NCBI GenBank assembly: GCA_964106915.2 | Contig: OZ066917.1 | DNA from: Podarcis gaigeae | Lineage: Eukaryota | Length of the DNA stretch: 64,000 nt | Reading direction: 5' to 3' (one strand) | Shown here: positions 801 to 52,723 of the stretch, piece by piece | Layout of the letters: each line of letters begins with the position of its first letter | Numbering within the stretch: position 1 is the stretch's first letter | Made by a program: the position numbers and the translations under genes | The notes under the pieces: model-generated | Databases searched by the model: none | The model's input: the letters and a program-made list of their open reading frames with translations, nothing else | Told to the model about the DNA's origin: nothing

Positions 801-1882
801 TCAGTTGCCACATTGCTATCTAGCCCCTCAACACAGGCTTCAACATACTTAACTGATTCTCTTCTCTTTTTCATCAAGGAAAAGGGGTACAGCAAATCGA
901 TTGTTTCTTGATTAAGGATCAGAACAGGTAAAGTTCTGATTGACTTGTGCTTGACTAAGCTCTATAATCACCACTGGAAGCAAGTCATTCCCATCATCCC
1001 TGGGGTTTATGGGAACTGGAGTCCAGCAACATATGGAGGGCACCGGTTCCCCAGTCCACACCCCTGCTTTTGAAGATCTCACATTTTATTGCTACAGGTA
1101 GAAGTGAACAAAACCTTTCCATAAAACAAAATTAACAGAAGGATTCGTCAGGACCAATCCCCCACCCTCTTTCTCTCTCTATATATATATAGCATTTTAA
1201 GGATGGCAGCATTCTTACAAGCAATGTCTAAAAATGTAGAAAGGAAAATAAACCCAAAGACATAGGCACCTATAGAGCTGCTTTGCTAATAAGTCTGATC
1301 TCCAAACTATTTGTACATATGACTATTTTCACCTGAAGTCTGTAAGTCCCAGTGATTTACCAGCTCTAAATGCCAGTTTGTTTTTCAAATATGGGAATGC
1401 ATCACAAAATATATATTCATAACATTAAAATGCAAAGTTCAAAAGCAGCCCTGAAATGAAGCGTGTCCACACTCTCATGCTGCCAAAGCTGTGCCGGTAA
1501 TTAACCTTCCTGAAATGTAGCATATATGTTAACTTTGGCTGTGTATCGGGGTATCTATCCCCATCCCCCACTACTTACTCACGATCCCCATCCTGCAAAG
1601 CACATTAAGAACTGACTTCTTATTGAAAATGACTGGCGCCTATTCAGGCTCAGGGTTATTAACTTACAGGGGTTTATATTGTTTCTTTCCTAGCCCTGCT
1701 CACAAAATATACTAATTGCACGCTTGAATAAAGAAACAGAACAGAGAGCCTGGAGATATTTCGACATGTTGAGAAGGAACACAAAGAGAGACTCCAACCA
1801 CGTGCACAGTTAGAATTATGTGTGACACCAAGCATCTTCCACATTATAATTCAGAGTAGTGAACTTCAGAAACAATGCTTGC

Positions 1883-2020
1883 CTCGTATCCCAGTCGGGC
1901 TGCCCTTTGCAGAAGAGTTTCTCCAGCGTTCTTATTGACAATAAGCCTTCGGGCTTCTGGCGGCATGGGACGACTTGGGGGAGTCTCCTGAGGGGCACTT
2001 GCAATCTGCAGCTGTGAGGG
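1883..2020 (-). CDS. BCOR: BCOR exon 10, in-frame 3' portion ([46 protein letters not shown])
   Basis: Clear BCOR peptide in ORF 1844..2107. The 5' boundary is inferred from the acceptor ccctcattattgcctgtctcttcag| (phase 0, 138 nt). The donor is GAG|GCAAGC. Confidence 0.8.
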
Positions 2021-5000
2021 CTGAAGAGACAGGCAATAATGAGGGACTCTGCTGCTGCAGGCGATTGTACAATGCCTGCTCATGTGATTTGACTGGCGAA
2101 GAGTCACAGTCTGAAGGAGCCTCTGGTCGCTTCCAGATTCTCCTCATTAACTATGACCTGTCAAAATCATTACTGGATTCCACACCCCACCCATCCATCC
2201 TTAATAATTCATTGAAAATCCATTTTCCTTTCTCTCTCTTTTTAAAAGTGTAGTAGTGTTGGCCTCTAGATTTATACCATCTAAAAGTTTTAAGATCAAA
2301 ATCCTGAAAGAATCTGAGGAGCCCTCACAGATTTGTCCTGGAGTAAAGTGGATTGAGCACTGCAGAACAATACAATGTGTTTTAAAGTAAACAGAAAGGG
2401 CTTGGAAGGGCCACTACATAAGACAACAAGCTAAGCGTTTAAAGTGGCTGATATTAGCCAAACCTGAAATATTAGTGGGACAACTGGGTTGGAAGAAAGA
2501 TACCTTCTCCTCAGCACTTTCGAGATCAGTGACATCATCTCCTGTCAGGGATGACCTCCTTCTCCTCTCCTGCAGTGCCAAATGTTTTGTTTTACACTGA
2601 CGTTTCCCTGGTGGCTTCTCACAGTCGCCATGTTTCTGCAGCAGGGATGCAGCTTGGAAATCTTCTTCCTCGTCTGTGCACAGCACATCTGTCTTCCAGT
2701 TTTCTTTCATTTTCTGCTGCTTGGCAGCCAACCTTGAAACTGGAGTACAGCTTGGCTGGGCTTGCCTTTTGCTGTTTATATTGGTAGATGAAAGGGTCTT
2801 CATGTGCGGAGATGCTGGGAATGGAGGGATACCTAAATGGGGAGTAAAGGCATCGTACATTGCATAGTGTGTTGAAAGGAAAGAGAATACACACACACAC
2901 ACACCCCAATACATGACACATTATTTTAAAACTTTTACATTCACATTAAGCAATTCCACATTTGGACTATAAGCAATAAAAAGTAATTGTAATGGGCGGG
3001 TACATCTGCTAAGCAAAGTTTGATGTTCCGAGATCTAAGCACAGTAAACAACCACACAGTCTAGCACTGCACCATCTAAGCATCGTGGCAAAGGAGATAT
3101 GAATCAGGCCTCCTTCTCAGGGTACTTGTTTATATGGATGCAGATGAGAGAAGAGGCTTCCTTACCTGTAATGACATGCTAGCAAAGTGGGAATATACTG
3201 CTCTTTCAGGTATAGAACTGCTGAAACCTTTCCACCTCAGGAAACCCATTTTTGCTTTTTGTAGAGCAGAGTGGAGTATAAAATTCAAAGGACACAGAAA
3301 CGGTTTCCATAATCAGAAACGCTGGTTGAGTGCCCAATTCCCATTTCTGCATTTGAAAAAGTCTCCCTTTGTGCACCAAAAATGAGGAAAGCATTGGGTC
3401 TGTTTCTTGCAGCATTCTGAAAAGGGATTCATGGATCCAAACAGCAATTTCTCAGTGTTGTGTGGCTCTTAACCATTAAGCAGCTGTCTCTCCTGTTTGC
3501 TGCATTGCAAGGACCTAACTTTCAAGAGTTGCCTTTTGCAAGGATGTCATGTACACAATCCAATCAGAAACAGGATATATTGACCCTAAGTGAACTTTTC
3601 AGCTTCTCTAAAATACCAACAATGCATTTCTCATAGCTTCAATGTTCATTCCACTTTTGTAACATTCTACTGACCATGCCTGAAGAGAGAAAAGGATTCC
3701 CTAAGACATGAAGGAAATGTAAAGAAAGCAAAGAGGTTCATGATGAGTTTGTTTACATGACAATTTTCAGGTAAGAGGAATCAGAACTAAACTTCTACAG
3801 AACCAAAAAAAGGACCAACAGAACAACTGGGATGAATAAAAATGAATGACTAACTGTGGTTTTAGAGTAAGAGCAGTATCTGAATTCACAGTGCATCAGA
3901 TCAAGGTTTCTTAAATTCTGTTTCTGTAAGATCAAGCAATGTATGAATGGAATAGAAACCAAGGGCTTGACTCATGAGTCTGATCTGTCTATCTAATGAA
4001 GGATTCTCTCTCTTGTCTTAAAAAAACTTTTAAAAAAGTGTAAGAAAGTGGTGAATCCTCTAGCTGTTGTAGACTTAGGCCTAGTTTTCACCAGGGTGAA
4101 ACTTGTGGCTGGACTTTTCAGGCAGGAAGTAGGGGCTTGCACTTCAATGTTCCTCTGTTCCAAAAATAAATAAATATCCCCATACCTGGAAAACTAGCAT
4201 GTTGCAAAGAAGGCTCATTTTCCATATGATTGCTTTCCGGGCGCAGGGAATCTTTTTGTATAGGAGAACATTCAACAATTCAGATCTCTGCTCTCAATAG
4301 CAGAATGTTCTCCCATATAAAAACAAAAAAACAAAACTCTGCCTATCACGGTCTGAAATGGTAGAGCCAAACTATGTGTTACATTAAATGCATGATTTTA
4401 TTTAATATGTTTCAGGTTTTGTTTTGATTTTAACACACAGCAGCTGCAATCTGGAGCACAGCACATGGGAAGGGCATTGACCCTTTCCCCCTGCACCATG
4501 GTCCTGATTAAAATCCCTCCCTCCTCCAGCTGCTATTTGCTCTTACAGGGAACCTGCTGTTGGTACCTATAGCAGCTCTGAGGAGTGATATTAGTCAGAA
4601 CAACAGTGCAAGGAGAAAGGGTTAAACAATAATTTAACATAACATATAATTTGACCCTCATAAGCTCTTTCCTAAAGACCTGCTCCCAGTTGGAGATGAA
4701 ATCTTATATTCCAATGTTATAGTAGGTTTCTATAGATTTTTATTGTGTATGACAGCTACATTGCTTGTCGTTATATTTAAATTGTCATTTTATTTCCTGT
4801 GAACTGGTTTTCAGTACAATCTATGTGTAGAAGATGCAGTATAGACAAAACTGACGACGACTAATTAGGAAAGAGAAGAAAGAAGTGGTAAAGCAGGCTA
4901 GGTAGAAGAACTCAGCTAGTCTGCATTTAACCACAAAGCGGAAAAGACACCTGTGCACCTTTTCTGGTATAAAGAGAATGGAACACAAGGAGACCACTTT

Positions 5001-8000
5001 CTTCCCTCCAGCTTTCCAGAGCAGGAAAAAATTAACTCAGAAGTTCAAACCTAATGGAGCAGTGAATTCCCACAAGTGGTTAAAAGACGCAGTACTCTTC
5101 ATACTGTCTTCCTTAATCTACACTCATTCATACGTGTCAAAAATTGTTATGAAATCAAAATCATTCCTGACTGGTAAAGATGAAGGGGGACTGTTATGAA
5201 GTCAAAAACTGTTAAGAATATCAAAAAGCAAAAATGACCAAAAAGAACCTACAGACAAAAATATTTTAGGTTTTTGGTATTCTCTCCCCCCCCCCACCCC
5301 CAATTTGAAGCGGGGAGGGAATCACACGACACAGACAGCACACACATCTAGGATGTGGCATTAAAACACAATTAGCACCACACACTACAGATTTGGCAAA
5401 ACAAGCATAAGTGGTTTAATAGTGGCACTTTAAGTCCTTTATATGATCATAGTAAAATTTTATATTATATATATAATATAATATAAAACTTCTACCCAAA
5501 AAACTACCGACAGCTTCTTAGCACTGGTGGCAGCATGCGTCACTAAGTAATGCTAGATTTCCCTAGTAATCTCTGCATACCTTGTTCATTGTCACTTGTT
5601 TTGAGGGACTCTTCAGACCAACTTCTATTGCTTTTGACCTCTGACCTTTTCTTGGTGTGCCTTTCTTCTGTGCAGTCTTTGACCTTTGCAGTGGCCTCTG
5701 GCTGAACAGCCTCAGCTAAATCTTTCCTGCTTTGCCGGCCCAACTTGCCGGGTGGGGATCTCTCTGGTGACACCTGCTGCTCCCACAGTTCCCTAAGATG
5801 CTGCAGGTGACGCTGCTTTTTGGGATGGAGCCCTGTTAATTCAATGCACACCTTCAGGTTGGTCACCTCATTACAATTGGGCTCTTCTAAGTGGTTAGAG
5901 GAATTGTTTGTCATTTCCCTCTCAGGCCAGTCATCTAATGGAAAAATAACTAAAAATTAATCAAAAGGCCCTCAACTTGAAACAAAAGCTATAGTTCACT
6001 TGTGGGGCAGATTGTTTCAGCTTCACCACCACACTATGCATTTTTAAAAGATTAGCTCAGGAGGGGTTTGCATGCACTACAGCAATTTGCATTGGCCAAA
6101 GATTACGTTGTCCAATGACTATTCTTGTACCTTGTAGGTACCCAAACATAATTCAGGCGAGGATTTGGGATTGGCACAACACAGGTCATAAATGGACATA
6201 GGTTAATCCAAAGAGTGTTCACTTCACAAGCCATGCCTTAAAGAGTGACCAACTTGGCCGGGTTACCTTTGGAGTTCTTCCTCTTTTTTGCTTTTGATGC
6301 AAATTCATCTTCCTGTTCCTCTACAAAGTTTTCTTTAAGGCTTCCATCGTTCTGCATTTTCTCACCAGAATGTTTACGCTTCCTGTCCTGGTGGGGGCAC
6401 AGGGCCTGGTTGACATCTTCTGCAGACTGGTCGCTGGCCTTTTCATATACGGTAAGTCTCTCCACACAACTGTCTGCTGGAGGACCTTTCTCCTCAGGAA
6501 CTTCAAAACCGTGGTCCTGGGTGCTCTCTGTATTGTGAAAATCACCTTCATTTAAAACAAAACAAAAAGGGTTACACATCACTAACTCAACGAGCATCTC
6601 ACGCAATTGCTTCCATCTCTTCAGAGCAATTGTAGCACCAAGTGCGTGCTTGTAAAGAGAATTTACAAAGTAGATGAAAAGGTTTAGACACAACTATGGA
6701 TTTTGGTAAGGATGAATATTATTACATCAAGGACCAATAGGAAAACTAGACATACACTAATATTGCTGGTATTTCACTAGGAAAAGAAGGTATGGTGCAA
6801 AATATTGATTTTCTCATGATGCAAAATAACCAGTTGTCATGAATTAATTCTAGCGGCTCCAAGTCAAATTTGCAAACCCAGGGAATGACAGACTACAGAG
6901 TGTGACAATACACCATAACCTGAACTGCTGGAAACACTTATTGCAGGGATGGGAAACCCTTTTCTGTTGAGAGTCACGTTCCCTAGAGAGTAATTAATCA
7001 GGGGCCACATACTGAGGGCCAGAGTGAAAAGTGAGAAGGGCCAATCCGATTTGCTCACACTCTCTGCTTCCCGCCCCTGCAACCTGCATGAAATTAGACT
7101 GACGCTGAAGGTGGCCCTCTCTGACCTATGACACCACCAGTATCCACGTATTCGGGGATTTAGTAGTGCAGTTAACATATTGCAATGCCACTCGTCTTCA
7201 AAAAATCTACAACTTTCTTCCTTTTTTGCAGCAGGCCTTGAAAACCTGGCTGACATTTTGTATCCTCAAGGTTATGCTTAACCTTAGTCAAGGATATATA
7301 CAATATAACAAAAACCACAGTCTTCAACCAACAGACAAACATTTCTGAACTAGACCTAAATAAATCAAAGTTGTATATCAACAATGCATAAGAAGGATCC
7401 CACGCCTTGAACCTGAAATTTTTAAAATTTTTAAACTTTTTTTCCCCCCTGTGCAATCCTGTTAAAGCTTCTTTGCCCTTCCCACATTATCTTTCTCTGT
7501 AGATAAGGACTTTTTTAAAGGATGCAGCCGGAGCCCTCTTCTCATGTATCTGCCTCTGGTCTCCTTTGTTCCCACCCTCCCGCACATTCCTCCTCTAATT
7601 TATCCCATCAATCTTATCACCCGCTTAACTTCCTCCTCTTCCATTTTGCTGCCTGCCTTATCTTCTCCTTCCATCAGCCCCATCTTAAAAGTTTGCCTGA
7701 CACCTGCTACTTCAAAAAGCAGACTGAAATGAGTTTTGAAACCCAGCAAAGGAAGATTATAAAACAGTGAGGGTTAAACTGAGCCAATTTACAGGAGCAG
7801 CTCCTTTACATTGAAACTTGATGATGTCAAAAGCACAAGAATCTGCACAATATTTAGTGTTGTTGCTATTATTGTGAGTTAGATTTACATGCAGATAAAA
7901 CTGACAGCAGATTAATAGGACTAGGTTACCCTCCTATCATAATATTTTTAGTTACATTGAAACAAGTTTTGCCTGGGACTGGTTTACAGGAAGGGTTCAA

Positions 8001-17000: not shown

Positions 17001-20000
17001 GATTTGTCCTTCCCTTCCTTCCTCACACCATTAGTTTCTTGGGCTCCAGCTGCCTTTCAAAAAGACAGCTCTTCCCTTCACCCTACTGCTTGATGAGGAT
17101 GTGTATGAATTGCCCCTCCGCCCACTGTATCAGCTGGGGGAATAGACAGACTGCAACTGCTTTCCTTTTAACTGAACAGCACTTTTGAGTTTTCAGGGCT
17201 CATGGGGAGTGCACTGAAGCACAAGCATTTACTGAAACTGAAGGAAGCCACAAAAAGGAGGAGGAGGAGCAGCAAGCAGAATGGGGCATCAGGTCTCCAG
17301 GTTCAGAAGGAAGCCTAGGATGCCTTCTTCAACTACCTGGACTCTGCTGAGCATAGCTGAGAAGAGAAGACTCTCTTCAAGAGTCTTAGCCTAGCCAAGT
17401 GCTCCCCAACCTTGTTCTGTGCTGGATTAACAGTGTTTATCAAATATAGGCAACAACTGGTTTACACAGGGGTTACGTTCCTGCCTGCCCCCTTTCCCCA
17501 GGCACTTTCAGGTCACTGCAATGCGAGGTTGCACATCAATTGGAAGCACGCAAATCATTGCCTGTAGATCTGGATTTTATAGATGAATATATGAATTTGT
17601 GGCCAACCCATTATGAGATAGCAACTTGTAATTAACATCTCTTATTGACTCAGTTTACCAGCCATGGCAGACCAGCCCCCACAAAGTTACACACACTCTA
17701 AAGAACACCCATTTTTTTTTAGCAAGTTTGTGGGAAGGGAGAAGTAATAGGTTATCACATCTGAAGAGGTTTGGATACACTGAGGCGACAAACCCTCCAA
17801 TCTTTTTGTTCATTGCACACTTACTGCTGCTGAAATCACTAGAAATTAGCAGGCACTTCTTCCATTCTAATGGTGGGAAGAATACAGCCCAAATCAAGAA
17901 CAAACAACCCCCAATTTTAAAAGATAATGGGCAGCTGTTGGGGCACTAGATTGGCTCCACTAGTATGACCAGGCTGCGTTGGCGTCACCACTGCCCAGCT
18001 CCCACATCACCCTGGTAAGCAGCAAGCAGCAGTGCTGGCAGGAGTTCAGAACCACGGTGCTGCCACACCAGCTGGCCCTGTTGATTCATGGCATAGTTTT
18101 ATTCTTTACTGGTCTGATGGAAGTTGACAAGCCTATGAATGGAAATTTTGTGCACAGAACAGTTTGCTGATATGGAGGGAGAGGGCAGGCTTCTACTACA
18201 CAATACAGATCACCACATTGCAGTGGCTTTCTGCAAAAAAAAGCAACAACACACACACACAATGTTAATGTTCACACTCTTCAAATAACTAAATGGAAGG
18301 TTTTCTGATTATATGACTTAACTCAACCCTCCCATTACCTGTCTTCCTTTCTCCCTGCTTAAGACAACAGAGAACCCACACTAAGACCGACGCAACTTTT
18401 AAGCTACACAAACGACGAGCTGCAGTTGACAAATGTTTACATGAAAGAAACTTGTTTTCACTTCTTGTCAAGGGAAACTTAGTGGGCGATATGCAACATT
18501 AGTCATATTCAGAAAAGACCCACTGACATCTACTGTTATCAAATGGTCTACTCTATGACTAATGTTGTATATCACCCAGTAGGTATTGCTATGACTGTGC
18601 AGCAGCTTTTTGGAGCTGAATGCTTTAACATCTACGTACAGTGGTACCTCGGATTAAGTACTTAATTCGTTCCGGAGGTCCGTTCTTAACCTGAAACTGT
18701 TCTTAACCTGAAGCACCACTTTAGCTAATGGAGCCTCCTCCTGCTGCCGCACCGCCGCCAAAGTGTTCTGTTCTCATCCTGAAGCAAAGTTCTTAACCCG
18801 AGGTAATATTTCTGGGTTAGCGGAGCCTGTAACCTGAAGCGTACGTAACCCGAGGTACCACTGTAATGGCATCGCCATGTTTTGCTCTAAATGACTACAG
18901 GAGGCACACAGAAATTTCAAAAAGGCATATAAAACTTTGCTTACATCTGTCATTGTCATTTTGCCCGGCAATGGCATCTTCCAAAGTGACAGACTTAGGT
19001 TTCTTTTCATTATTTCCTTTCAAGTTTTCCCAGTCTGCTTGGTTGAATCTGCAGACCTCCGGGTCTTTGGTTGCTACGTGTCCTTCTCTCTCTTTCATCT
19101 CCAACTCTGAGAAGCGCATCATTGCACGCTAGAAAGAGAATTGATATGGGGGAAAAAGACACCTCACAATAAGAGCTACTTCATTTACCTTACCTTCTAT
19201 GAAAAGTATTTCCAAAAGAAAATATCTGCTCAAACCCAAAGTTTTGAGATACACACAATTCTATATAAAGTTTTAAAATGCCATATGTTCAATATGCAAG
19301 GCATGTAGTATCTATACACAAATAATATATAAAAGTAAATAACATTTTATTTATTTATTTAAGTGTATTAAAAAGCATTGTCTTTTGAGAGGTATAACAA
19401 AGAAACAAAACATAAACTGTACAATGAATAAAGACGACCATGGCCCACAACTTCCCTTTGTGTACTTGGAAATGAAATTTTAACTCANNNNNNNNNNNNN
19501 NNNNNNNNNNNNNNNNNNNNNNNNNNNNNNNNNNNNNNNNNNNNNNNNNNNNNNNNNNNNNNNNNNNNNNNNNNNNNNNNNNNNNNNNNNNNNNNNNNNN
19601 NNNNNNNNNNNNNNNNNNNNNNNNNNNNNNNNNNNTCATCCATTTTTATAAGCATCAACTAATTCTTTCTTTTTTTAACAACGCAAAACAATTTGGCTTA
19701 ACTCATTCTTTCACAAATCTAAAAAATAACCTACAATACTTGCCATCATTCAACGTCAAATTCACTACAGCTTCTATTCCTTTAAGCTACATTTCTGCTT
19801 GGTAAAGAAGTTGCATTAAACCCGCTAACAAATGGCTGCTACTCCTTTTTAATCAAATGTCCTGTATGAAATAATCATCAAAACTTCTGCCTTTCCTTTG
19901 GTATTTAATAGTGCTAGCCAAACACAGGCAAGCTATAGCAAACTACCTTTAAAAACAAACATGTCATGCATTCTTCAGCTTCCTTTCACTACTACATGTT

Positions 20001-27295: not shown

Positions 27296-30200
27296 TAAGA
27301 AAAGAAAAAATTCACTGGGAGTGTTGGGCATCTGCATAACTTCTACAGGATGTAAGAGTACTCGACTTTGGCGGCATAATTCTGTCTGTGTGTTTAACCC
27401 TTCGTAAACAGCAATATATAATTTGCATTGATACAGACACCAGTGGATTTTCTTTTCCACGTGTAGCACAACCAGTGTGTGTGATCCAGCGGCAATTGTG
27501 ACACCCCCCTCCCTCTGAAATCAATGGTACCTAGTGTCACTAAATGTACTTTTTAGCCTGATTGTCCCCATTATGTTGAAATAACTTTCAGTGAAACTTT
27601 AAATCCAAATAATAGGGACGATCCAACCAAATTACCGTAAGCAGGACAAATTCCCGCAGGTTTTCATTTATTCACAAAGCAGAGCTCAACATTGGCGGGA
27701 TCTTACCCAGTGCACAAAAGAACTGGGTTGTGTTTGAAGAGATAACTTTAGCAAGGAGGAAATCCAAATACGAAAACACTGCCTGGGAGTGGGAACGGGG
27801 CCAGACTGAAGGCACAGAGTGATATCCTAACATTCACTTTTTTAAAAAAGCAAGGTGTCAAATGTCAGTTTCCACTTCAAATGAAGTTTCTAGCGTTTCT
27901 ATCTGTGAAAACAAGCTGGAGTAGAAGGCCAGAGACAAACAAGAGCTCCTATTTTTAATAGGGCAACCATTTTCCTAGAAGTTCGTCTCCCAGCCCAGAA
28001 AAGGGTTAAGGGGAGAGAGAAAAAAACATTAAGTAGGTTGGTGAGATCCCCAGCCCTTGATTTGATTAAGTAACCCAACCCTGGTGGCTTCCACCATTGG
28101 AGCTGCTGTTGTTGCGCCGTCGCCGCCGCTGCTGCTTTGAGTGCTTTCAGTAATTCAATGACGCCTGCTCACTCCAGGGAAAGAAATCATTAGCGGGCTC
28201 ACTGGAGAAGCATTAGCAGTCCGAAAGGATCGGCGCTGCGTGCAGCAGGGAAGGCAGGTGAAAGGCAACCGGATTTTCGCGTCCAGCAACAGAAGGGCCT
28301 CGCCTGCCTTTCTTCCCTCCCGAACGCGCCATCTCCGCCCGCATTAAATTCTAGTTTGCTGCATGAGTGAAGTGTCAGGACAAGCTGCGTTTTATTAACA
28401 CGATTATCGCGGCGCGTGATTTATTCCAGTGCCGGATTTTAATTGCTCTTTGGAGGTTCAGTCGTTTCTTTTGACTGAGCTTCAGCCTGCATCCCGCTGT
28501 TAAATGCTGGGTTAATAAGTAGGGGGAGCCTTTAATGCACAGGATACCCCTTCAGCTCTTCCTCTCACCAAAAAGGAGGGAGGGGAGGGGAAAGTGCGCG
28601 CAGGCACAAAATGCCTCGCCAAGGGGAGGAACGGCGAACGCGGGACGCGCTGCGCTAAATTGCTTTTCTGCAGAGAAGGGAGGCTTCCCGAGCTTTTTCG
28701 GTTTTTTAAACGGAGACGTACTAGGGCGCAATCCTTAACGTAGCTACCACCGAGGAAGTCGCTCTGCACAAATCGGGACCCATTTCTAAGCTAAACACGT
28801 TTAGGATCGCACGGAACGGATGGAGCCCTTAACCTTTGTATTCCTAATAAGGGGCCATCCTACACACGGTTAATAACTTGGGGATACAGCACCACTGAAA
28901 CTAACTCACTATCCAATATAAGTATGCAATTAGGATCGGGCTCTGTTGCTGCAGCCCTTCAACCCCTGTGGCTCAACCAAGCCCAGTGGGATTACCCGAG
29001 AGTAAACGGTGGAGGAGCCCAGGGGTCTGGTCGGACCTATCCACGCAGAGGCCAGTGGAGAGCACCACGCACGCACGCACCGCAGTTTAAAAGCCCCCGT
29101 GCTCCAAAACAGACGAATTAACCCTTAAAACCAGAGCGGAGGCAAAACCTAGGTTGCGTTTGCGCACAAATGCTCCAGAGGAGGACCTCCGTATAAGCGC
29201 CAAGGAAAGCCCTGTGTTCTCTCAAGCATTTCATGAGCCCTTCTTGTTCCCCCTCCCAGCTCCTTGAAGAAGCCTTTTGTGCAGATCCCCACGCACGGAA
29301 CATATTTTACTGAAATGGCACCGTCCCCTCCCTCTTTGCCTCCCTCCGCAGCAGCTAGCTTGCAAGAGCTGACCCCAATTGCTGTCAAGGAAGAGGAGCT
29401 GGCCCCTTCTCCTCTCCTTCCTTCTCCTCGCACCCCCCCCCCACCGCCCCAGTAAAGGCTAGGACGAAATATCGCCCTATCATTCAAAAGTTGTTGTTCC
29501 AGGGGAAAGACGGGTTTTGCTGACCAGATTTAGTGTTTTCCAGATGCACGGCTCGTAATGTTTTCAAATGGAGCAGCCGCAGCCTGGAGAGTGATTGAGA
29601 GTTTTACATACGGTTAGTAGCCGCCCAGAGCGCTGCCTCATCTGTAAGGAATGGAGGGGACACAAAGTCCAAAGAGATAGGGCTGTCTGCACGGAGGGAG
29701 GGGACGCCGCTCCCTCTCCCCTTTCCCCCACCCCTTTTCTGAAAAGCAGGAGACATGCCCGGCAGCCTAATCTTACTTTTTATAGGCTGGAACTGAGCTA
29801 AGGCTCTGGGTTTCCTCGCGGGGAAATGTATCGTTGGTTGCCATCGGCTGGTGCTTCTGAGATCTGCAAAAGTCGACCCCAGGAGCGCGATCTGAGTCGA
29901 ACCCAGATACTTGGGGCGCTGTGTGGGGAGGGGGAGCCGTTGGCTTCCAAAGGCAGATATGCAAGCGAAGCTACGCCCTGAATGCAAAGGTTTCCTAAAC
30001 TGGGAAGAGAGGAAGGTCAAAGGCAAATTGCCAAATAATCGGCCCAGATTATGATAGCTCCCAAAGCGCTACAGTGCGTATTTAAAAATAAAACAACAAA
30101 ACAAGGAGAAAAAGAAAACTATGTTGCCTTCTGCTGCAAGACAACCATCTCTCTTTGCTAGTCCACGCCGCGAAACTCGCCCCGGGCAAAGGTGTTTGCA

Positions 30201-32381
30201 CAGAAGGGGCCCAGAGCGAGGCTGGGATTGCTTAAAGTCTGCCGCGGAGCTTTTGCAACAGAAGAAGTTGCCAAATTCCCCTTTGGAGCGTCGCCGCTGC
30301 ATCCCAGCGACACGAGGCGAAAGGGAGGCGGGATCCGCGGGCTGGGAGAGAAAGGCCTTTTCGGAGGCCGGGAGAAGAGTTGCAGCAGCCGGGAGCGCGC
30401 AGCGCCTGAGCCGGTTCTGTGCAAAAAGTACAACCGAGCGCGCGCGATCCCTTCCTGGGAGGTGGGCGAGGCGAGATGTTTGCTCGTTTCTGCTCGTTTT
30501 CAGGGTCGCGCTTCCCGGCGCATACATACGTTGTTTATAATCACCGCCGCCCTGATGAACTTTTTGTGAACTGTTTAAAAGTGGAGGTCTGTTGAACAAA
30601 CAGCGGCGCCACTGCCAGCCATAATTTCATTGCAACAAGCAACAGACTTTTAACCCTTCGGGCTCCAGGAGGAGACGTTGCTGGCAAAGCAGCAGCTCTT
30701 TCTGCTTTGTGGCTGTGAGCCTGGAAGGTTACATATAAGCAACCACTCCGCTTACGGAGCAATGGATCCACAGCTCAGTTAAGTCCGAGCATTTGGATCT
30801 ACGGTCCAGAGCAGGCTTTACCCGCAAGTCCCTGTGAAATCAAAGAAATGCGCTCAAGGCTGCAATCCTACCCACTACTCGTTTACCCGGGAGTAATCCC
30901 CAGTTAACGCATTGGGACTAGAGTAGACATGCACTGGTTTACCCTGTAACTACCCAAACCTTCCTCTTACCTGAAGATAAATCCCAAGAGGTCCAGTAAA
31001 ACAAGGATGGGGGACCGGAAGCCCACTCTCCTTAGGCCGCACCCCACTGGCCCTGCCCCCACAAACCCTTCGGAGCGCTTTTGTCTGGTTTGAATGTGTC
31101 CTTGGCCGAAGATAATGCCTCTTCGCTTGCCTTGACGCACTTTATAGAGAAATAGAACACAGGAACCTTTTGACTCTTGCGCGGTTAGAATGTAAGCTGC
31201 TGTAACATCCATGGAGCCACCGCCGCCTCTGGCCTCGCCCACCGCCGGCCCCGGAAGGCTCCTTCAGGTGGGACCCTCAGGCTGAAAAGGAGTGCCCCCC
31301 CCCGCACCGAAATAAAGACAGACCCAAGTCCCGCTTGTATTTTGCGAGGCCTAGTCCCCAGAAAGTGCACGCAGAATCGGGGCTGTTCAGGACTACTTGT
31401 TAGCTCTAGGTATTAATCGCCTGCCTAGACATGCTAATAAAAGGCGACATATATAATGCATAGTGTAAATTAAAATACACAAGCGTCTGAGAAAGTCACG
31501 CTTAGAGACACTGTCAAAAAGAAGTGGGGTTTGGGCATAAGGAGGGCGGGTAGGCCGTGGCTGCTAAAGTTTGTTAGTGTTTATTGCGATTATTTCCCAC
31601 CCCATCCCCCCAAAAATCAGTACGTTGAATTGGTGTGTATGCTTTAGCTGAGATTCCGGCTACACTAGAGAGTTGGACTAAAGACCGCAGTTTTATCTAA
31701 TTCGTCCTGAAAATTAAATAAACCACCTCCCTGGCTGTTTCTCCGCCTCCGTGGAGCGATTCAGGGCTTGGCACTTTGCTTTTCCGAGTCCCCGCAAGTC
31801 TCCTTCTACCTTCGGGAATCTCCCCGTTATGTAACACTCTTTTGCTTTATACATAGAAGGGGGGCGGAGGGGACGTAAGGCAGGAGACAACAGAAAATAA
31901 CAGAACCGCACATATGTCACGATTCCCCCCCCCAAAAAAAAACTTGATTAAAAAGCTCTCCTCGGTGCCTCCCCCTCCCGCATGCTACTTTGGAGAGCAC
32001 ACCCCCTCCACCTCGTTTATATGCTGCTAGCACATGCCCAGCACCTCGGCCAGAGTTGCTAGAAGCTGCCATAGCTGCAGCAGCTTCCGACCGTACCAGC
32101 CCGCGACGGAAAGCAAAACCTCCTCCCCGGGGTGGGGATCGCGCCGCGCCTCCTGCCGAGCGAGGCGAGCTCGCTGGCTGCGCGAGAATGTGACCTAAGG
32201 CGGCAGCAGCAGCAGCAGCAGCAGGCAGGCAGGCTCCGAGCGCCAAAGAGGCCACGCGGAATTTCCTCCCCGGAGGTGTCCGGCTGACAAATCCGTCAAG
32301 CTCGCCTGGGAGGAAAGGGGGGGGAGCTGTACGGCGGGGTTTCGCTGCAAAACCTGCTCGGTGTCCGCTGCCGAGAGGAGC

Positions 32382-32386
<5 letters not shown>

Positions 32387-32435
<49 letters not shown>

Positions 32436-32445
32436 CCCCCCCCCC
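32387..32445. repeat. (CT)n microsatellite followed by a C run
   Basis: Read directly. Confidence 0.97.
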
Positions 32446-35400
32446 ATCAAGCTGCTGCGCTCACGTTACAGAGCAGACCCGAAAGGAAAAGAAAAAAGCG
32501 GCCCCGGCGCTCGGCGTGTCTGGCGGAACACCCAGTTCTCCGGGCACCCCTGGCAGCCGCCGCAACTCCACATCATTGGGTGGGAGGCAAATGCATTCAC
32601 GCAGCGCCCTCCTTGGCTGTTGGATCCTCCTCTGCCCTCCCCGTTCTCGTTCTCTCTCTTTTCAAAAAGGGAACCGCTTGCATCGCCCTCGCAACGGCAA
32701 CAGACTCTTGGCAGCCACTGGAGGCGGGCGCAGGAGCAAACTTTTGCTCGCACGCTCCTGCCTTCGCAAACTCAACAAACCTGGTGCCCGCGGCCAGGGG
32801 AAGCAGCCGCAGCGCTCTGCGCTTCGCCTCCCCTGGAAGGAGGGTCCGAAGAAACCATGCCGAGAGCGTTGGCGGCCTCTTTCCCGCCATTCAAGGTGGC
32901 GAAGGCGCCTTTCTTGCCAATCAGGGCACGAAAAAGGGTGCAAGGAGGAAAAATAACCCAGAGAGTAAGCCCAGCCGGGCTTCAGCGAGCCAGGAAGGAG
33001 AGCGAAAGCCGCGAGCACACGAGTTCCCTGTTGGCGCCTTTCCTCTTTCCACCTCCTGCTCCTTTTGGCAGCCAGCCACTTTCCACTGCATAAACCACAG
33101 GCCCGCCGTCAGCTGCACGGCAGGCGGGTCGGAGCCGTAGAGCAAGCGGACGTGGATGGCGAATGTCAGGGGGGAATGGCGCTAACCCAGCGGGGCTTTC
33201 GCGTTAATCAGAGAAGGCCCTCCTCTGTAATCAAAACAAGACCATACATAGTTTGCCCATCTCTAGCTCCCTGCCCGTTTCAGGTCTCCCCTAAACAAGC
33301 TGCAGAGCATCTGATGGGGAGGCAGCCTTTTCTCCTATGTTTCAATAATGACGCGACGTACACTTAGCCTATTCATGAGCCTGCACATGTACTCAAGCCT
33401 GAACTCGGGGGCAACTACAGGCTTTCTGGCTCTACATTACTGGAAATGTATTTATTGCATTTATATATCTTTTCCAAGGAGGTCAAGGTGGCAAACGTTC
33501 CCCAATTTTAGCCGCACATCAATCGCGCGAGGTAAGATCAAAGGAAAGGGCAGAGCGAGTCAAGGTCACTCAGGGAGCATCTTGGTCTGCACTAAGCACT
33601 ACACTGTCCCGGCTTCCGTTTAAGTCAAACCACCTTTTCTTCCATTTACAATTTCGAATTGGCCCAGCCCTTCCTATCTTCTGTCTGAACCAAGCCCCGC
33701 TGTGTTAAACGGGCCTCGCCCCACGGTATTACAACTGTAACCTTAAGATATTAGTGCAGTTTGCTATTATAAACAAGGCTGCAGTCTTGTGCACACTTGG
33801 CTCGGAGTAAGCCCCCTTGAACACAGAAGAATTTATGAAGAAACATGCACTGGGTCGTGCAAAATACGGTGGCATAAATTTGAACACGCCGTTGCGCGGA
33901 GGTGGCGGGGAGCTACGTTGTACGAGAGAGCTTGAAGCACGTTTGTTAAGCGAAGTAGGAAACAGCAAACTAAGTATCCACGGCGGGGAGGGAGGCGGCT
34001 GACCTTTAGCCGGGACGTGTGGCATTTTGTCTGGCCACAAAGCTAAGCACAATGCGCCTGCGACGTCTCCAACCCGATTTTCTCATGTGCGTATCGGAGG
34101 CGCGCAGAACGATGCCCAAGTTTGCCCAAGCAGCGCGCGGAAAAAGAGAAGAACCGGTTGGGTGGCTATTTCAGGGGCTTTTAAACTTCCCCTTTCTTCT
34201 GTCTGCGCACGTTCCTCGGGAGGCTTCCAGCGCCGTCACGTGCGCCTTCGCGATCCGGACTTTCTTCTCATGTCATGTAAACAAAGCGCTGTGTAGGCAT
34301 TACGGGGCGGCCGCGATCGATTGGGCACAGGCAACGGCATCCGGAATGGGGATTCCGGCTTCGAGACTCTCCTGTTTTCCCTTGGCATTTGTAAGGAACC
34401 GGAGCTGCAAGCCTTGGGGAAAGGAACCGTGTGCATTGCAAAAGTGAGGGGTGAGATGTCGAGAGCAGGAAGACGAGGGCCAGCCCCAGCCAACTGCTGT
34501 GTAGCCGCAGGAAAGGAAAGGGCTTCCCTGCCTTTTGCCACGGAGACCCTGCTTCGAAGGGAGAGAGTGGCTTCAGACAGCCTTTGCCTTCGTTTCCCTG
34601 AAAGATCGGGGTTCAAAGGGGGCGGTGCACAGACCGGCAGCGCATCCAAAAACCTCTGGCAGCAGCCCGTCATTTCCTCCACCGCCGTGCGCAAGGCTTC
34701 GGACCGCAGCAGCCTCCTTTGCACATCAACCGCGAAGCGAAGCGCAGTGACTTCGACCCTTTACCGCCATTTGCCAGGAAAACTTGTGAATAAGTGATGT
34801 TCGGGGACGGGGAGGGGCGGGGAGAGGAGGAGGACGGAAGGCCGTCAATAAGGGAAAGGTAAAATGGCTGGCGAGCCTTCAAATAACCCTGCTCGCCGTC
34901 TCTGTCTCTCTCTCTCTCACTCACTCACTCACACACACCTCGTCTTCTGCCAACGTTTTCTGCGCGGTGGAGAAATAGCGCCCCCGCTTCTCCTAGTACG
35001 AGACCCGGGGGAAGCTGTGGGGCCCGTTTGTTCCACCCAAATGAACTCGGAGGTGGGGGAGGTGGAGCGGCCACGCGGGGGGATATTGGGGGGTCGACGT
35101 GCGCCTTAATAATCTGGTCCCTCGTGAAATAGCCCAGGCACACGGGGCGTTGCAGGAAGCAGAAACGAAACAATGAAGGCGAGAGAAGTCTTTCTCTCGC
35201 GACCTCGCGTCTCTCCTCGCGGGTTTGATCCGAGAAAGTCCCCGAATTGACTTGTGCCATTAAGGCCCAGTTCCCGCACTACGTACACGGCGAAAAGCAC
35301 CTTCGCCTCGGGCGCCGATGTGGGGGTCTCACCCCGTCCCGCGGGGTCCCCTCCTCCACCCTTCCGAGAGGATTCTAGGCTCGGCAGCACCGTGGCCAAG

Positions 35401-36337
35401 GGCGCTCGCCTGGCCTGTACGGAGCGCAGGCACCTCCTCGCGCTGCCGCCGCCTGCAACTCTCCTTCGCTCTTTCAGCCAGACCGAATGAGTCATCCCAG
35501 CCCGTTTCGTCTTTGAGATCCCCGACCGGCCGCGCCATTTTAGGCGCGCGCACATACATGGGCTTGGTTTCCGCTGCTGCTTGGAGAGACAACAAGCAGG
35601 CGGTGACAGAGGCGGAGGGGCGGCGGCGGCAGCAGCAACGGGCCAGAGGAAAGGAGAAGGGCCTCCGTGCAGCCTACCCGCTTGGCACTCAGTGGGTCTT
35701 TCAGGTACCTTAGCGGACGCCGCCTCCCTGGGTATCAGCCAAGCGAGAGCGGGGGGAAACGCAGGCAAGGCCCCGTCGGCGCCTGCGGCCCATTAACCCC
35801 TCGCACGCCACCCAGCCCGGACAGCAGGCAAGCTGGCTGGCTTGCAAAGACGGAAGGAAGAGGTTCCTCCCAGCCCAGTGTTGGTCTCACAAGGGTATGC
35901 TAAGAATCCAGGTTAGGGAGGGAGTAGGCTGAAAGAAATTATTTTTTAAAAAAAACAAACAAACCGTGTTTGTTAATAGGAAAGTTTAAGAAAGAAAACC
36001 AGCACAAGTATCGAGCTATGTGCGTGACTAGTACACATAAACAAACCAGCCCAGACCCAAGGTCGGTTGCTGTGAAGACCAGGATGAAATGGTAAACCCG
36101 CTTGGTCCACACCCTCTTGCTTTTGAAGCCCCACGGTCTACAGCAGCGCGCGTGCACGGGGGAGGCGCACACCCACAGCCGAGTTTCTCCCCACCCCCTT
36201 CGTGATGAATGTGCTCCCCGCCCTTTCTCTCTCCCATTGCCTGCCCCGCTCGGGTCGGCGCTGCCCTTTGTGGCTTTTCGGCCCGGCGGCCGCGCTGCGA
36301 GAGCCCAAAGGAGGTCGGCGTCGGCCCCCGTATTCAC

Positions 36338-36800
36338 CGGGGAAACGAGCAGATATTGATCACGGGCGAGTTGATTTTGCTTAATTGTGGCTGACAGTGC
36401 CTGTGGTTTCCTCATTTGCGGAGCAACAGCATCGAGGGTCTGATTGATTGGGAGCGCAGCGCCTCCCACTCCCCGCTCTCCCTCCCGGCAGACACACACA
36501 CACACGGGGGGGGGGGGGAGCGAGCAGCCACCTCCGAGAGGAGCCTGTGTGAAGGCGAGTCCCTCGGGAGGGGAAGGAGCAGCTTCTCATTATTCAGCAA
36601 ATGGCCGGCGCGCCGGCAGCTAGAGATGCAGCTTGGTTGGTTCGCTGTCGAGCGCTCGGGCGAGCTTAAGTAGCCTTAAATCCTCCCGCTCCCCCCGCAG
36701 GACCGTCTGCCTGCTTTTGCCTGCGTCGTCGGCCCCTTCGCCTCCACCACCGCCGCCGCCGCCTCCTCCTCTTCGCCCGCCAGCAGATTGGTCCGCGAGT
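36338..36800 (-). promoter_or_regulatory. Candidate BCOR core promoter and non-coding first exon
   Basis: Minus strand: CCAAT at ~36791, GGC run, ATTTAAG at ~36680, YY1-like GCCATTT at ~36600, candidate donor CCG|GTGAAT at 36338/36337. Confidence 0.45.
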
Positions 36801-37759
36801 TAAGCGCTCGCGAATGGAGAGCTTTTAACAGGGCGGGGGGTTGCAGTCCTCGTCGCCTAAGCGCTCGCTCAGTCGAAGTCCCCACGCCGAGGTGGCGAGC
36901 TCGTCCCCCGCAAACTTAACTCAGGAGCAACCTCGCTCTCCTTTCAATGAAATGACGCCATAGCAAAGCAGCTTAAGGCGCAATCCAGCGCTCACAAGCC
37001 CCAGTTGAAATTAATTGCTAAAGAACAGCCGCCGCTCCCTGCGCAGCTCTGTCAGCCGGGCTTGCGCAGGAGACCTTCCCGTTGGCTTGCGCCCGTAGCC
37101 ATCTCTTCCTACGAAGAAGAAGCGAAAATCCAAACCACCAGCACCATCACACTTCGTCTGTACAAATCCTACCAGTAAGGAGTTTTGGTGCCAGCGCTTT
37201 CTGGAAAATGTACATTAAACGTGCCTTTTAAAATAGAGATGAGCGCAGCAGACTTAAATGTCAGAAAAGGAGCTGTGTGGCAACCATCTGCAAGCCGCTT
37301 GATCCAGGGTGACTTTACAATTGCCCTGCGACCCTTTTTATATCTACTCAGAAGTAAACCTCGTTGAGCTGAATGGGCTTACTCACAGGTGAGCGCGCAT
37401 AGGATTGCCGCCTTAAATGTGAAATCTGGGCCCAGTACCTAAACCTGCCTATCGATTGCAGGAGGGTTTCTTCCACGAATCATGTTCTCCTATCCAGATT
37501 TCCCTACATTAGCATTTCTAGCTAACTGTCCCATCCCAAGTGCTTTCCGCTCCTTTAACTTTTTTTTAGCCCCCCTAAAGTGCATTCCTGCACCCCCGGG
37601 GTGGGTTCCATCGTAAAGTAAATGAGCACAGGATTGCAGGCGGCCCAAGGCTCACCGAGAGGAAGGCAGAATACACAGCGACACCTGCTTCCATAGGATG
37701 GAGCCGAAAGACAATTTTTGCGAGGACGACTAGGGCTTGGGCATCATTCATAGGAACAA

Positions 37760-37920
37760 AGGCTTATCATGAACCAGACCATGGGCCTATCTTGCTCATA
37801 TTGTCTACACTGACCGGCAGCAGCTCTCCAGGGTTTCAGGAAGGCCTACCTGGGGACGCCAGGAATTGAAGCAGGGATTTTCTGCGTGCAAGGCAGATGC
37901 TCTACCACTCAGCCAGGGAC
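37760..37920 (-). mobile_element. Old tRNA-derived SINE fragment
   Basis: Minus strand ggctgagtggtagagcatctgccttgcacgcagaaaatccctgcttcaattcc is a tRNA-like head. Confidence 0.6.
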
Positions 37921-40091
37921 TCCCCAAGTCCAAACAGGGCCGCTGGTGGGGATAGGAAGCGTTCCTCAATTCTAACTGTACATCGCCTAGCACCCTAAGG
38001 ACAAACCCTCCAGTCTCCCAGAGGCATCTTCAGCAGAATCTATTCCGCCTTTACTAAAAGCGTGGCACGTGTCCTCAAGCAGCAAGCAGCGATCTAGACG
38101 AATCCTCCGGTTTTAATATCCCAGCAATGCGCAGGGCAAGAACCGGCCGAGGGAGCACCGAGCAGGGCCTCGCGGACAAAGTTTCACGCCGCAGCTGGGA
38201 TTCCTCCTCGGGCTGCGAAGCTGCGCGCCCCCTCGGCCTTCCTCGGAAGACTTAAGGACCCCGGCGCAGCCTGCCTTGCCATCTTGAAGTCGTCGGCTCC
38301 GAAACGGGAGGGAGGCGAGGGGGGCTGAGCGCGGAAGCAACTGCGCTGCAGATGGGCGGCTATGAATTTTTGCTGCTGCTTCGAGCCTTAATTACTGGCT
38401 CTTGATCCGTGGGACTACGACACGACACCGCCAAGGTTAAAATGCCCGGAACAGCTCTGAGCAGATGTGAGCGAGTTGGCAGACGCGCAAATGAGGTCTG
38501 CCTCCAAGCACGATAACAAGTGACTAATACATTGCATATCGCTGAAAGAAAATTATTTTCCTCTCATTTGCATTAGCTCTCTCTCTCTTCCCCCCCCCCC
38601 TTAAGACCAAAATAAAAAGCCAACGACAGCACCACCACTCGCGCGCCCCGCTCAGAGACAGCAGTCTAATCCTGGGGTGGGGGGGGAGAGAGAAAGATGC
38701 TGGGTGACTTTTAGAAATTTGTGGAAGCAGGAAAAGATTTGCCAGTGTTTTGGCAAGGCAGCCGTGTTTATCTTTCCGCCTTTGCTCCAAGGCAAAAGTA
38801 GTTTCGCAAGCAACATTCCTGCAGAAAATGGCAGACGTCACGTTAGAGCTCGATTTATTGCTCTGGCGCTTAATGAATGACTGCTGGGGGTATCTTCCAC
38901 CCAGAGTGCCTCGTGCACAGAAACTGGAGAGTGACAGATATGCCGCATGAGAGTGACGAGGAATGAAATTCGATGTACAGTTGCCAGTTGCCCTGAAACA
39001 AGCCGGCATTGCCCAAAACAGAAATTCTATTCACAAACCAGAAGTGCTCGGATTGAAGACGATCGGCGCCACATTCCAAAACAAAATAGAATAATCCTTA
39101 TTCCCAGGTTTTATATGACCTGCCTCCCCGCTGCATGCATGTTAATTCCGAAGCAAGTCCCACAGTGCTGAATGGAGCTCATCCGCTTCCAAGCAGGGTT
39201 AGAGCTGTATCACTAATGGCTTCCCGTTGAAATCAAAAAGACAGATTTCCAAGCTGTTAAGGACGGGCCGGGGGAGACCCATTTCAGACAGGCTGACCCC
39301 TCACTTTAGCGAGACTAATAATCTCGGTACTAAACCTGTTTATTAAACAGATCCCATTGAAATCAATTGAACTTCCCTTAACGTGAATCGTACTGGGATC
39401 ACAGGTTCCTCAAAAGGCATCGAAAGATTTAACTGCCAAGTGTAAATGTACTTTCCTGTATACTCGCAATCAATTTGAAAACAATAGGACATTTTCACAC
39501 AATATGTTAAAGATTTTCTTTTCTTTTCCCCACATCTTTAATTCAAATATAAGACCTAAACAAGCTACAATGCCTGTTCATATTAAACATGGCTATTTTT
39601 CTCTCTTTGTCACACTTTAAGTGTTTTTGCAGCCATAGTGTATCAGTAGTGCAAGAGAATACTCAGAATTATATTTCATGTTGTGTGCATGTGCCCTTGT
39701 AGGTCTTTCCCAGATGCACTCAAATGGCACAAGTGAGATGGAAAAAACATATTGAAAACTGCTTCAGCTTCACTTTATGATGTGTGGGAATTCAGACACA
39801 CTTTTGTACTTCCAGATTAATGTGTGAAACAGGAAATTGCACGGGTGAGATGCACAGGAAACATATGGGGGGGGCGGTTCATGTATTCCATGCAAGGAGA
39901 AATTGGGTGTATTCTTCACATATTACACCAAAGCATTAAAAGCCCACTTTGCCATCATGTCTCTAGCCATTCTGGGTCATTAGCAATAAGGCCCTGATGC
40001 ACTTTCCAAGGTGGGAAAGCTGCATAAGCTACTAATTTGCTATATTGATATAGTTGATAGACAAAGAAGTGCTCGCTCCATTACCTACAAT

Positions 40092-50800: not shown

Positions 50801-52723
50801 GAAGCAGGCAGGAGGAAAGGGAGATGACAGGAACCGAGACTCAGTGGGGAGGAAGGCGTACCAGTCACTTCCTGCTCTGAGGTTCCTTAACTGGGGGGAG
50901 GGGGCGTTTCAGCCACTCCTCTCTCTCTTTTTTACAACTCTGCTTGGCTTCTGCTTGTAAAGGGTTCCTGAAACTAACAACCCATGGTTCAAGTAACATC
51001 TCAGCTTGTTCAGAGCACAGGGGACAAAAGAACTCTCCCCTGGCCTACCCAAGATAGCGGATACCACAACAAACATATCAGCCTGAAAGCACCACCAAAC
51101 CCTTTGCTTATTTTTTTGTTAAACCAGAGTAGAGTCCTTATGCATGTCTACTAGAAAGTAAGCAAAATACTTACTCTTCAGAAAGTGAATATGATTATTG
51201 CCAAATACGCCTTTTTCACCACCCCCATACTGTATATTTTTCCCCCCAAGTGCTCCCCTTCTCTTTAATGTTGCACTTATTTAGCAAACCCGGAATTTGT
51301 TTAATTGCTTTCTTTTGGCCTCCCCCAGCAACTTGCTCCTTTTGAAAATGCTGTACGCACTCAAAATTATGCACACTCTCCAATCTATCACTATGTCAGG
51401 AAAGGCCTTGCAGAGGTGGCATAGAACTACTGAGCAAACATAGCTCATGGATTGCAACCACACATCTTATTTTGGGTTTGGGGTTTCCTTCAAGGAAGCC
51501 AGTCATCCTCCTGATAAGAATTTGCCTATGCCAATTATAATGTGCAAATGGGTAACCTGAAACTGCATGTGTATTCATAAGTGAGTCTCAATGAGTTCAC
51601 TGGCACTTACTCCAAAGTAAGTATAGTATTCATCGTATTGCAGCCATTACCATGTTGCCCAAGCCACAGTAAATCCAGAATCACTTGATTCATTGATTGA
51701 TTGCTTTGAACTCAGTGTACCTAGAAGTACATGCATTAAGCTCTGTTGCCACAGTGCACACCCTGATAACTGAATCCTGATCTACAGGTTAAAGTTCACG
51801 TTATGGAAGATGCCAGCATGGTTAAAGAGCAGTGTAAACAAAGGTATAAAAAGGTAAGAAGGTTCCCCTATTCCAAAATGAAAGTCTTGTCCTAATTAGG
51901 TGGTGAGAATTAAAAACACACAAGTTATGGCAAAACCAATGTGCTGGGTAAAAGAAGCCAGCACAGCAATTGAGAAGCAAAATTCTAAGTGCATATAACA
52001 ACTAACATTTATTAAAATAATATACGGCTTTATAAGGCTTTGGGCTGGGTGTCCACCAGTATGCAGATGATACCCAGCTCTACCTCTCCTTCAAATCAGA
52101 ACCAGTGAGGGCAGTGAAGGTCTTGTGTGAGTTGCTGAGGCGGTTGGCGGGTGGATGGCAGCTAACAGATTGATGCTGAATCCTGACAAGACAGAAGTTA
52201 TGGGGCACAGGGGGCAGGTGGGTGTGGGGGACTCCCTGGTCCTGAACAGGGTAACTGTGCCTCTGAAAGAACAGGTGTGCAGCCTGGGAGTCATTTTGGA
52301 CTCACAGCTGTCCATGGAGGCACAGGTCAATTCTGTGTCCAGGGCAGCTGTTTATCAGCTCCATCTGGTACGCAGGCTGAGACCCTACCTGCCTGCAGAC
52401 TGTCTCACTAGAGTGGTGCATGCTCTAGTTATCTCCTGCTTGGATTATTGCAATGCACTCTACATGGTCACCGAGAAACTACAACTAATCCAGAATGTGG
52501 CAGCTAGACTGGTGACTGGGAATGGACACCAGGACCATATAACACCGGTCCTAAAGGATCTTTACTGGCTCCCAGTACGTTTCTGAGCACAATTCAAAGT
52601 GTTGGTGCAGACCTTTAAAGCCCTAGTTACAGATAGGTAGCCGTGTTGGTCTGCCATAGTCAAAACAAAACAAAAAATAAATCCTTCCAGTAGCACCTTA
52701 AAGACCAACTAAGTCAGTTTTTG

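Follow-up and report, generated by a model that had tools for sequence, protein, structure and literature searches.

An ancestral BCOR acceptor abandoned in squamates and a predicted RNA hairpin that may keep it closed

In a 64,000-nucleotide (nt) stretch of Podarcis gaigeae DNA (GCA_964106915.2, contig OZ066917.1), called the window below, BCOR lies on the minus strand and retains, upstream of exon 10, a splice acceptor that squamates no longer use productively. Very probably, an ancestor had two acceptors of exon 10, and on the squamate branch productive splicing narrowed to the short form; this history taken together with a masking function for a predicted hairpin is favoured by a little over even odds. 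The full reading, to which a probability of about 45% can be given, is that the abandoned coding segment has been reused as a predicted hairpin that silences its own former acceptor, or meters it via nonsense-mediated decay (NMD), and that amino-acid-changing substitutions and the frameshift were favoured for the base pairs that they close, locking in a short BCOR throughout squamates. The gene was identified through its large exon-4 frame, 100% identical (rounded) to Podarcis muralis BCOR, and through exons 3, 4 and 6–10, which align to P. muralis RefSeq isoform X1. In this isoform, short exon 10 (residues 1391–1436) adjoins exon 9 (residues 1282–1390) directly. Isoform and splice-site usage throughout is that of gene models and annotation (RefSeq, Ensembl) combined with frame analysis.

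Splicing exon 9 to the old acceptor at 2157 yields 17 residues and then TGA at 2106–2104, as the initial annotation had noted; an acceptor at 2150 is out of frame too and leads to a stop within exon 10. The internal 3' splice site described then is indeed well formed, with a branch-like A, a pyrimidine-rich tract and an AG, and the phase 0-0 exon that it opens matches the P. muralis protein in frame (Table 1). Annotation and frame analysis agree that the former 5' half of exon 10 is now intron, and the expected loss of some 40–45 residues of the pre-ankyrin linker comes to 44. The proposal that the acceptor moved 137 nt downstream is right in that the working site is 2020, but that site pre-existed and was not newly made.

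The antiquity of the internal site is seen outside squamates. In cryptodire turtles and in Crocodylus porosus, the annotated gene models include the long as well as the short form, and turtle and crocodile DNA carry the same internal branch motif, 13/17 pyrimidine tract and CAG; a site newly created in the squamate lineage, as first supposed, is thus contradicted. The 44-codon frame is open in turtle and crocodile DNA, which indicates that the segment was coding in the ancestor, and the tract of the external acceptor is weak in every species compared (7–10/17 pyrimidines). Only the long form is found among the listed proteins of birds, mammals, two pleurodire turtles, lungfish and sturgeon. 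A sauropsid ancestor with two in-frame BCOR exon 10 acceptors, 132 nt apart, is well supported by parsimony applied to these gene models.

In squamates, the short junction is present in every retrieved protein that spans it, from about 30 species that include geckos, a skink, a cordylid, lacertids, an amphisbaenian, a varanid, iguanians and snakes; the change had been ascribed to the lineage of the window and proves common to all squamates sampled. Both 1-nt insertions of Podarcis are also found in Gekko, Tiliqua, Sceloporus and Varanus, and in Rhineura and three snake-like contigs (L001–L003, assigned to snakes from their peptides) the first insertion is shared and the tract around the second is remodelled. 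The long frame is open in none of nine squamates, all being frameshifted or stopped, with the premature stop at an identical position in gecko, skink, lacertid and Sceloporus and with further indels and stops in the remnant of snakes and Rhineura. The old external AG is intact in all nine. Because the short junction, the indels and the broken long frame are common to squamates, loss of the long form probably predates the gecko split. This split took place about 170–200 million years ago.

The initial annotation described the first insertion as 4 nt, an appearance that arises because the mammalian exon is one codon shorter; relative to turtle and crocodile it is a single T (2150/2149). The length of the remnant is accounted for as 132+1+3+1 = 137 nt, that is, two 1-nt T insertions and one in-frame CAG. 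An assembly error or a true null allele, for which the broken frame itself and nothing else speaks, can practically be dismissed: the indels recur in five other lizard assemblies, among them independent gecko, skink, iguanian, varanid and amphisbaenian assemblies, with the first indel extending to the three snake contigs, and the annotation of every species includes a full-length BCOR that has its ankyrin and PUFD domains, in keeping with the early view that the gene is not a null.

Some squamates show additional changes around these exons. Anolis and Sceloporus, both pleurodont iguanians, use an AG 9 nt further downstream (2013–2012 in the window; L005 23270–23285), and Sceloporus now has AA in place of the internal AG; the acrodonts Pogona and Phrynocephalus retain the usual internal site. 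Rhineura BCOR has an additional annotated 21-codon exon between exons 10 and 11 (L008 35012–35074). Annotated isoforms of several squamates (P0349, P0353, P0155, P0374 and P0379) end with exon 14 and lack the last exon, which presumably encodes most of the PUFD domain.

The remnant was said to be decaying as intron, and its rate of change argues otherwise. Rates are given here as multiples of a tree scaled to 323 fourfold-degenerate sites, a yardstick chosen because intron rates may be inflated by alignment error. The remnant core (2157–2046) evolves at 0.57x in six lizards (confidence interval, CI, 0.44–0.74; p=1e-4), about one third of the rate of the remaining intron 9, the interior of which runs at 1.81x, and the -20..-1 region of the old acceptor evolves at 0.30x. 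Identity between Podarcis and gecko reaches 91% for the remnant, as against 78% for fourfold-degenerate sites and 65% for the intron interior. Substitutions in the lizard remnant are spread over the old codon positions as 13/13/10, compared with 256/149/711 gene-wide, and this lack of periodicity means that the conservation is not protein constraint.

A three-rate fit gives 0.13 for turtle and crocodile, 1.86 for the squamate stem and 0.57 for crown lizards (stem versus crown, p=0.0004), a succession that reads, on these alignments, as tight constraint, a burst on the squamate stem and then renewed constraint. Plain neutral decay under a locally low mutation rate, with the hairpin arising by chance, would accommodate the extra indels and stops of snakes and Rhineura, the absence of codon periodicity and the fact that, among 28 background intron windows, two change no faster than the remnant. 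It is nevertheless improbable, given the 0.57x segment beside 1.8x in the same intron, the 1.86x of the same segment on the stem and a fold that is extreme against three controls. Among 12 regions upstream of BCOR acceptors, only that of exon 8 is slower than the remnant. The exon 8 flank, at the 3' end of intron 7 (5936–6070, minus strand) and before an alternatively spliced exon, is the slowest in lizards at 0.36x, its last 20 nt near-invariant.

Local folding predicts a hairpin at 2158–2102 in which the first nine bases of the old exon, and the G of the AG just before them, are paired. In Podarcis, its stability (-34.4 kcal/mol, z -5.1) exceeds that of all 548 GC-matched windows in 26 kilobases of BCOR, and z-scores elsewhere are -5.05 in gecko, -4.5 in Sceloporus, -3.7 in Varanus and -2.6 in skink (significant); only a partial hairpin is predicted in turtle (-17.0 kcal/mol, z -1.4) and crocodile (-13.6 kcal/mol, z -0.5). 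The sense strand folds more stably than the antisense by 3–9 kcal/mol in five lizards, the outer helix is robust to the choice of folding window in Podarcis, gecko and Sceloporus, and the same window at other BCOR acceptors gives -4 to -24 kcal/mol, except for the Rhineura-specific exon at -30.5.

The assembly of this structure can be followed on the squamate stem branch, where changes approximately doubled the predicted stability, from -17 and -14 to about -35 kcal/mol. Ten stem-branch substitutions fall in the hairpin: four make three new pairs (two of these four are one both-sided change, the other gains being two one-sided changes), three preserve pairs, three are unpaired and none breaks a pair; the frameshifting T contributes one further pair to the outer helix. 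When stem-branch changes were simulated with the same change types, the observed stability was reached in 1/3000 and 0/3000 trials; with the same positions, in 18/3000 and 3/3000.

A different possibility is that the segment is kept for its sequence, as a splicing enhancer for an exon with a weak GC donor or as a DNA enhancer overlapping the coding exon, the hairpin being incidental. In turtle and crocodile, the segment is indeed more constrained than ordinary coding sequence (0.13 vs 0.44), with third-position changes at 2/44 vs 20% gene-wide; exon 10 does carry a GC donor, and conservation extends to the 3' half of the remnant (0.63x), where no fold is significant, an observation that also weighs against the hairpin reading. 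Kept sequence, however, predicts neither the burst on the stem nor changes that build base pairs, and such a cis element is rather unlikely. As to the GC donor, it is replaced by GT in one snake-like contig (L003).

Several further points weigh against a masking hairpin. In turtle and crocodile, where the old site is still in use, its junction is already predicted to be paired by the outer helix; lizards differ from them in total stability and in partial pairing of the A of the old AG. The internal tract is likewise predicted to be paired in several lizards, and in long windows the Varanus hairpin is outcompeted by another helix. The six living lizards have no compensatory or both-sided change among them, and paired sites are but weakly more conserved than unpaired ones (p=0.07, Rhineura excluded). 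The hairpin is weak in Rhineura and absent in snakes, and both are on the short site without it. The structure is a prediction, its folding window was picked after a first look at the data, and splice-site usage is that of annotation; moreover, the effect of a given hairpin on splicing is not reliably predictable without a test (PMC11802449). As regards the date, tuatara is not among the listed matches of the homolog searches, and timing on the stem relies on the sampled squamates, turtle and crocodile.

Other structures at the locus fared less well. A long-range helix joining the old acceptor to the internal tract dominates in Varanus and was rejected as the main structure, at -13 kcal/mol in four lizards, with ensemble probability <0.4 and no covariation. 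The 3' half of the remnant offers a second hairpin, which was rejected as not significant, and an RNA thermometer was rejected because the predicted pairing of the old site is constant from 15 to 40 C. The three snake-like contigs have a different, register-shifted helix in the remnant that leaves the old AG uncovered and is not significant against shuffles. An Rfam covariance-model search of 1700–2800 gave no match up to E=1.

The favoured sequence of events begins with the well-supported history: as the short form became the sole productive form on the squamate branch, the 44 codons lost protein constraint and gained two 1-nt insertions, so that the external site yields only a stop. A modest ancestral helix would already have touched the weak external acceptor, and the segment, freed from coding constraint, could have gained the substitutions that gave a 21-pair hairpin starting on AG|G. 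Folding in the nascent RNA before the internal site is transcribed, as we infer, the hairpin would conceal the old AG from 3' splice-site factors and direct splicing to the internal acceptor, with no transcript lost to decay. Because use of the old site after the frameshift gives a decay substrate, there would be reason to keep that site shut, and selection for a closed old site may account for a large part of the conservation that followed. In human genes, pairing of a 3' splice site goes along with poorer use of that site (PMC11802449). In the hairpin-less snakes and Rhineura, the internal-site tracts have 14 and 16/17 pyrimidines vs 13 elsewhere; these tracts are also more U-rich, which would make the hairpin dispensable there, and tract strengthening as compensation for hairpin loss fits these two lineages, the only ones concerned.

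The old site may instead be open some of the time. In such a poison extension, the old acceptor would sometimes be used, NMD would destroy the transcript and BCOR dose would be tuned, with the hairpin, if real, setting the rate. The AG kept in all nine squamates behind a -20..-1 region that evolves at 0.30x, the frameshift or stop in every squamate long form (with the stop at codon 18 and five exons, 11–15, downstream) and a conservation equal to that of the flank of alternatively spliced exon 8 are all in its favour, and poison exons conserved within introns form a recognised class (PMC11632617). Yet the hairpin encloses the shared stop as well as the old junction and can explain why both are conserved, and the unchanging predicted pairing between 15 and 40 C counts against it as well. 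Such an extension is unlikely, although it is compatible with the hairpin reading, to which it may add a regulatory layer.

Relatives of the squamate BCOR change are known. Lineage-specific loss of an external alternative acceptor (Nurtdinov et al. 2007, PMC2231371) resembles it in having two acceptors in outgroups, one lineage that is internal-only and residues deleted; in squamate BCOR, however, the external AG was not mutated away and persists, followed by an extension that is frameshifted and conserved. Intronization or splice-site shift via a newly created site (Kim and Hahn-type human cases, PMC3538075) likewise turns ancestral coding sequence into intron and shortens the protein in frame, but the BCOR site predates the split from turtles and crocodilians, and the 9-nt shift of pleurodont iguanians follows loss of an AG and not gain of a new one. 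The change is thus a lineage-specific loss of an external alternative acceptor, not intronization via a new site. Acceptors hidden in RNA stems (PMC11802449; review PMC7404189) share with the arrangement predicted here a stem that covers the AG of a poorly used site and the first bases of its exon, although the BCOR stem is longer (21 pairs), ex-coding, traceable in its assembly and known by prediction. Poison exons and alternative splicing coupled to NMD (PMC11632617) offer the likeness of a conserved intronic segment behind an intact acceptor, the use of which would give a premature stop, whereas the BCOR segment extends an exon at its 3' splice site and derives from an isoform that was coding.

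The 44 lost residues, a basic cluster included, belong to the stretch that separates the ankyrin repeats from the Pfam BCOR domain. Since the short form occurs in turtles too, loss of these residues was tolerable before it became fixed. Loss of nuclear import through the deletion is unlikely: the mapped human BCOR nuclear signals are upstream of the lost region, human BCOR truncated by c.3668delC retains both of them and is nuclear (PMC9359619), and the basic clusters at residues 1124 and 1156 are intact in Podarcis. A whole vertebrate order does without the 44-residue linker and its basic motif, and the path from alternative to constitutive isoform in an essential Polycomb (PRC1.1) subunit can be traced although the old splice site was not destroyed. 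The unusual part is that this site survives, apparently closed by structure made from abandoned codons. If the hairpin is functional, coding sequence has taken on a second role as RNA structure, an outcome that would escape scans for decayed exons; turtles, with both isoforms, and snakes, with the hairpin lost, provide natural controls. A literature search found no paper on this BCOR event, while the short gene model itself, with acceptor 2020, is already in RefSeq and Ensembl.

Table 1. Features of BCOR exons 9 and 10 and of the intron between them, in window coordinates.
Feature	Position	Strand	Basis or remark
BCOR exon 9	2504..2830	-	aa 1282-1390 of P. muralis RefSeq X1; PF15808 match (part of Pfam BCOR domain)
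Exon 9 donor	2504/2503 boundary, GT at 2503	-	sequence
Intron 9 as annotated in squamates, 483 nt, ex-coding segment included	2021..2503	-	mapping to annotated proteins
Ancestral external acceptor, AG 2159-2158	2158..2177	-	weak tract, 9/17 pyrimidines; rate 0.30x
Remnant, 137 nt, of 132-nt/44-codon extension	2021..2157	-	extension coding in turtles, crocodilians, birds, mammals
Predicted 21-pair hairpin	2102..2158	-	2158-2149/2102-2111, 2145-2140/2114-2119, 2137-2133/2122-2126
First frameshift, 1-nt T insertion	2149..2150	-	adds one pair to outer helix
Premature stop of long form, codon 18, TGA	2104..2106	-	within 3' arm of predicted hairpin
CAG run, one extra in-frame triplet vs turtle and crocodile	2049..2057	-	alignment
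Internal acceptor, AG 2022-2021, branch-like CCCTCAT 2045-2039 (A at 2040)	2021..2045	-	tract 13/17 pyrimidines
Second frameshift, 1-nt T insertion in internal pyrimidine tract	2025/2024	-	alignment to turtle and crocodile
Short exon 10, 138 nt, 46 aa, phase 0-0, into ankyrin repeats	1883..2020	-	aa 1391-1436 of P. muralis RefSeq X1
Exon 10 donor, non-canonical GC	1877..1882	-	common to lizards, turtle and crocodile

Elsewhere in the window, the alternative 54-nt exon 5 was missed by mapping, and its spacing from exon 4 in other species puts it in the N stretch at 19488–19635. A large CpG-rich region at 28000–40000, 5' of the coding exons, likely holds the BCOR promoter and non-coding first exons. 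A plus-strand open reading frame at 52155–52586 resembles a fragment of a reverse transcriptase of a long interspersed nuclear element (LINE, L2-type).
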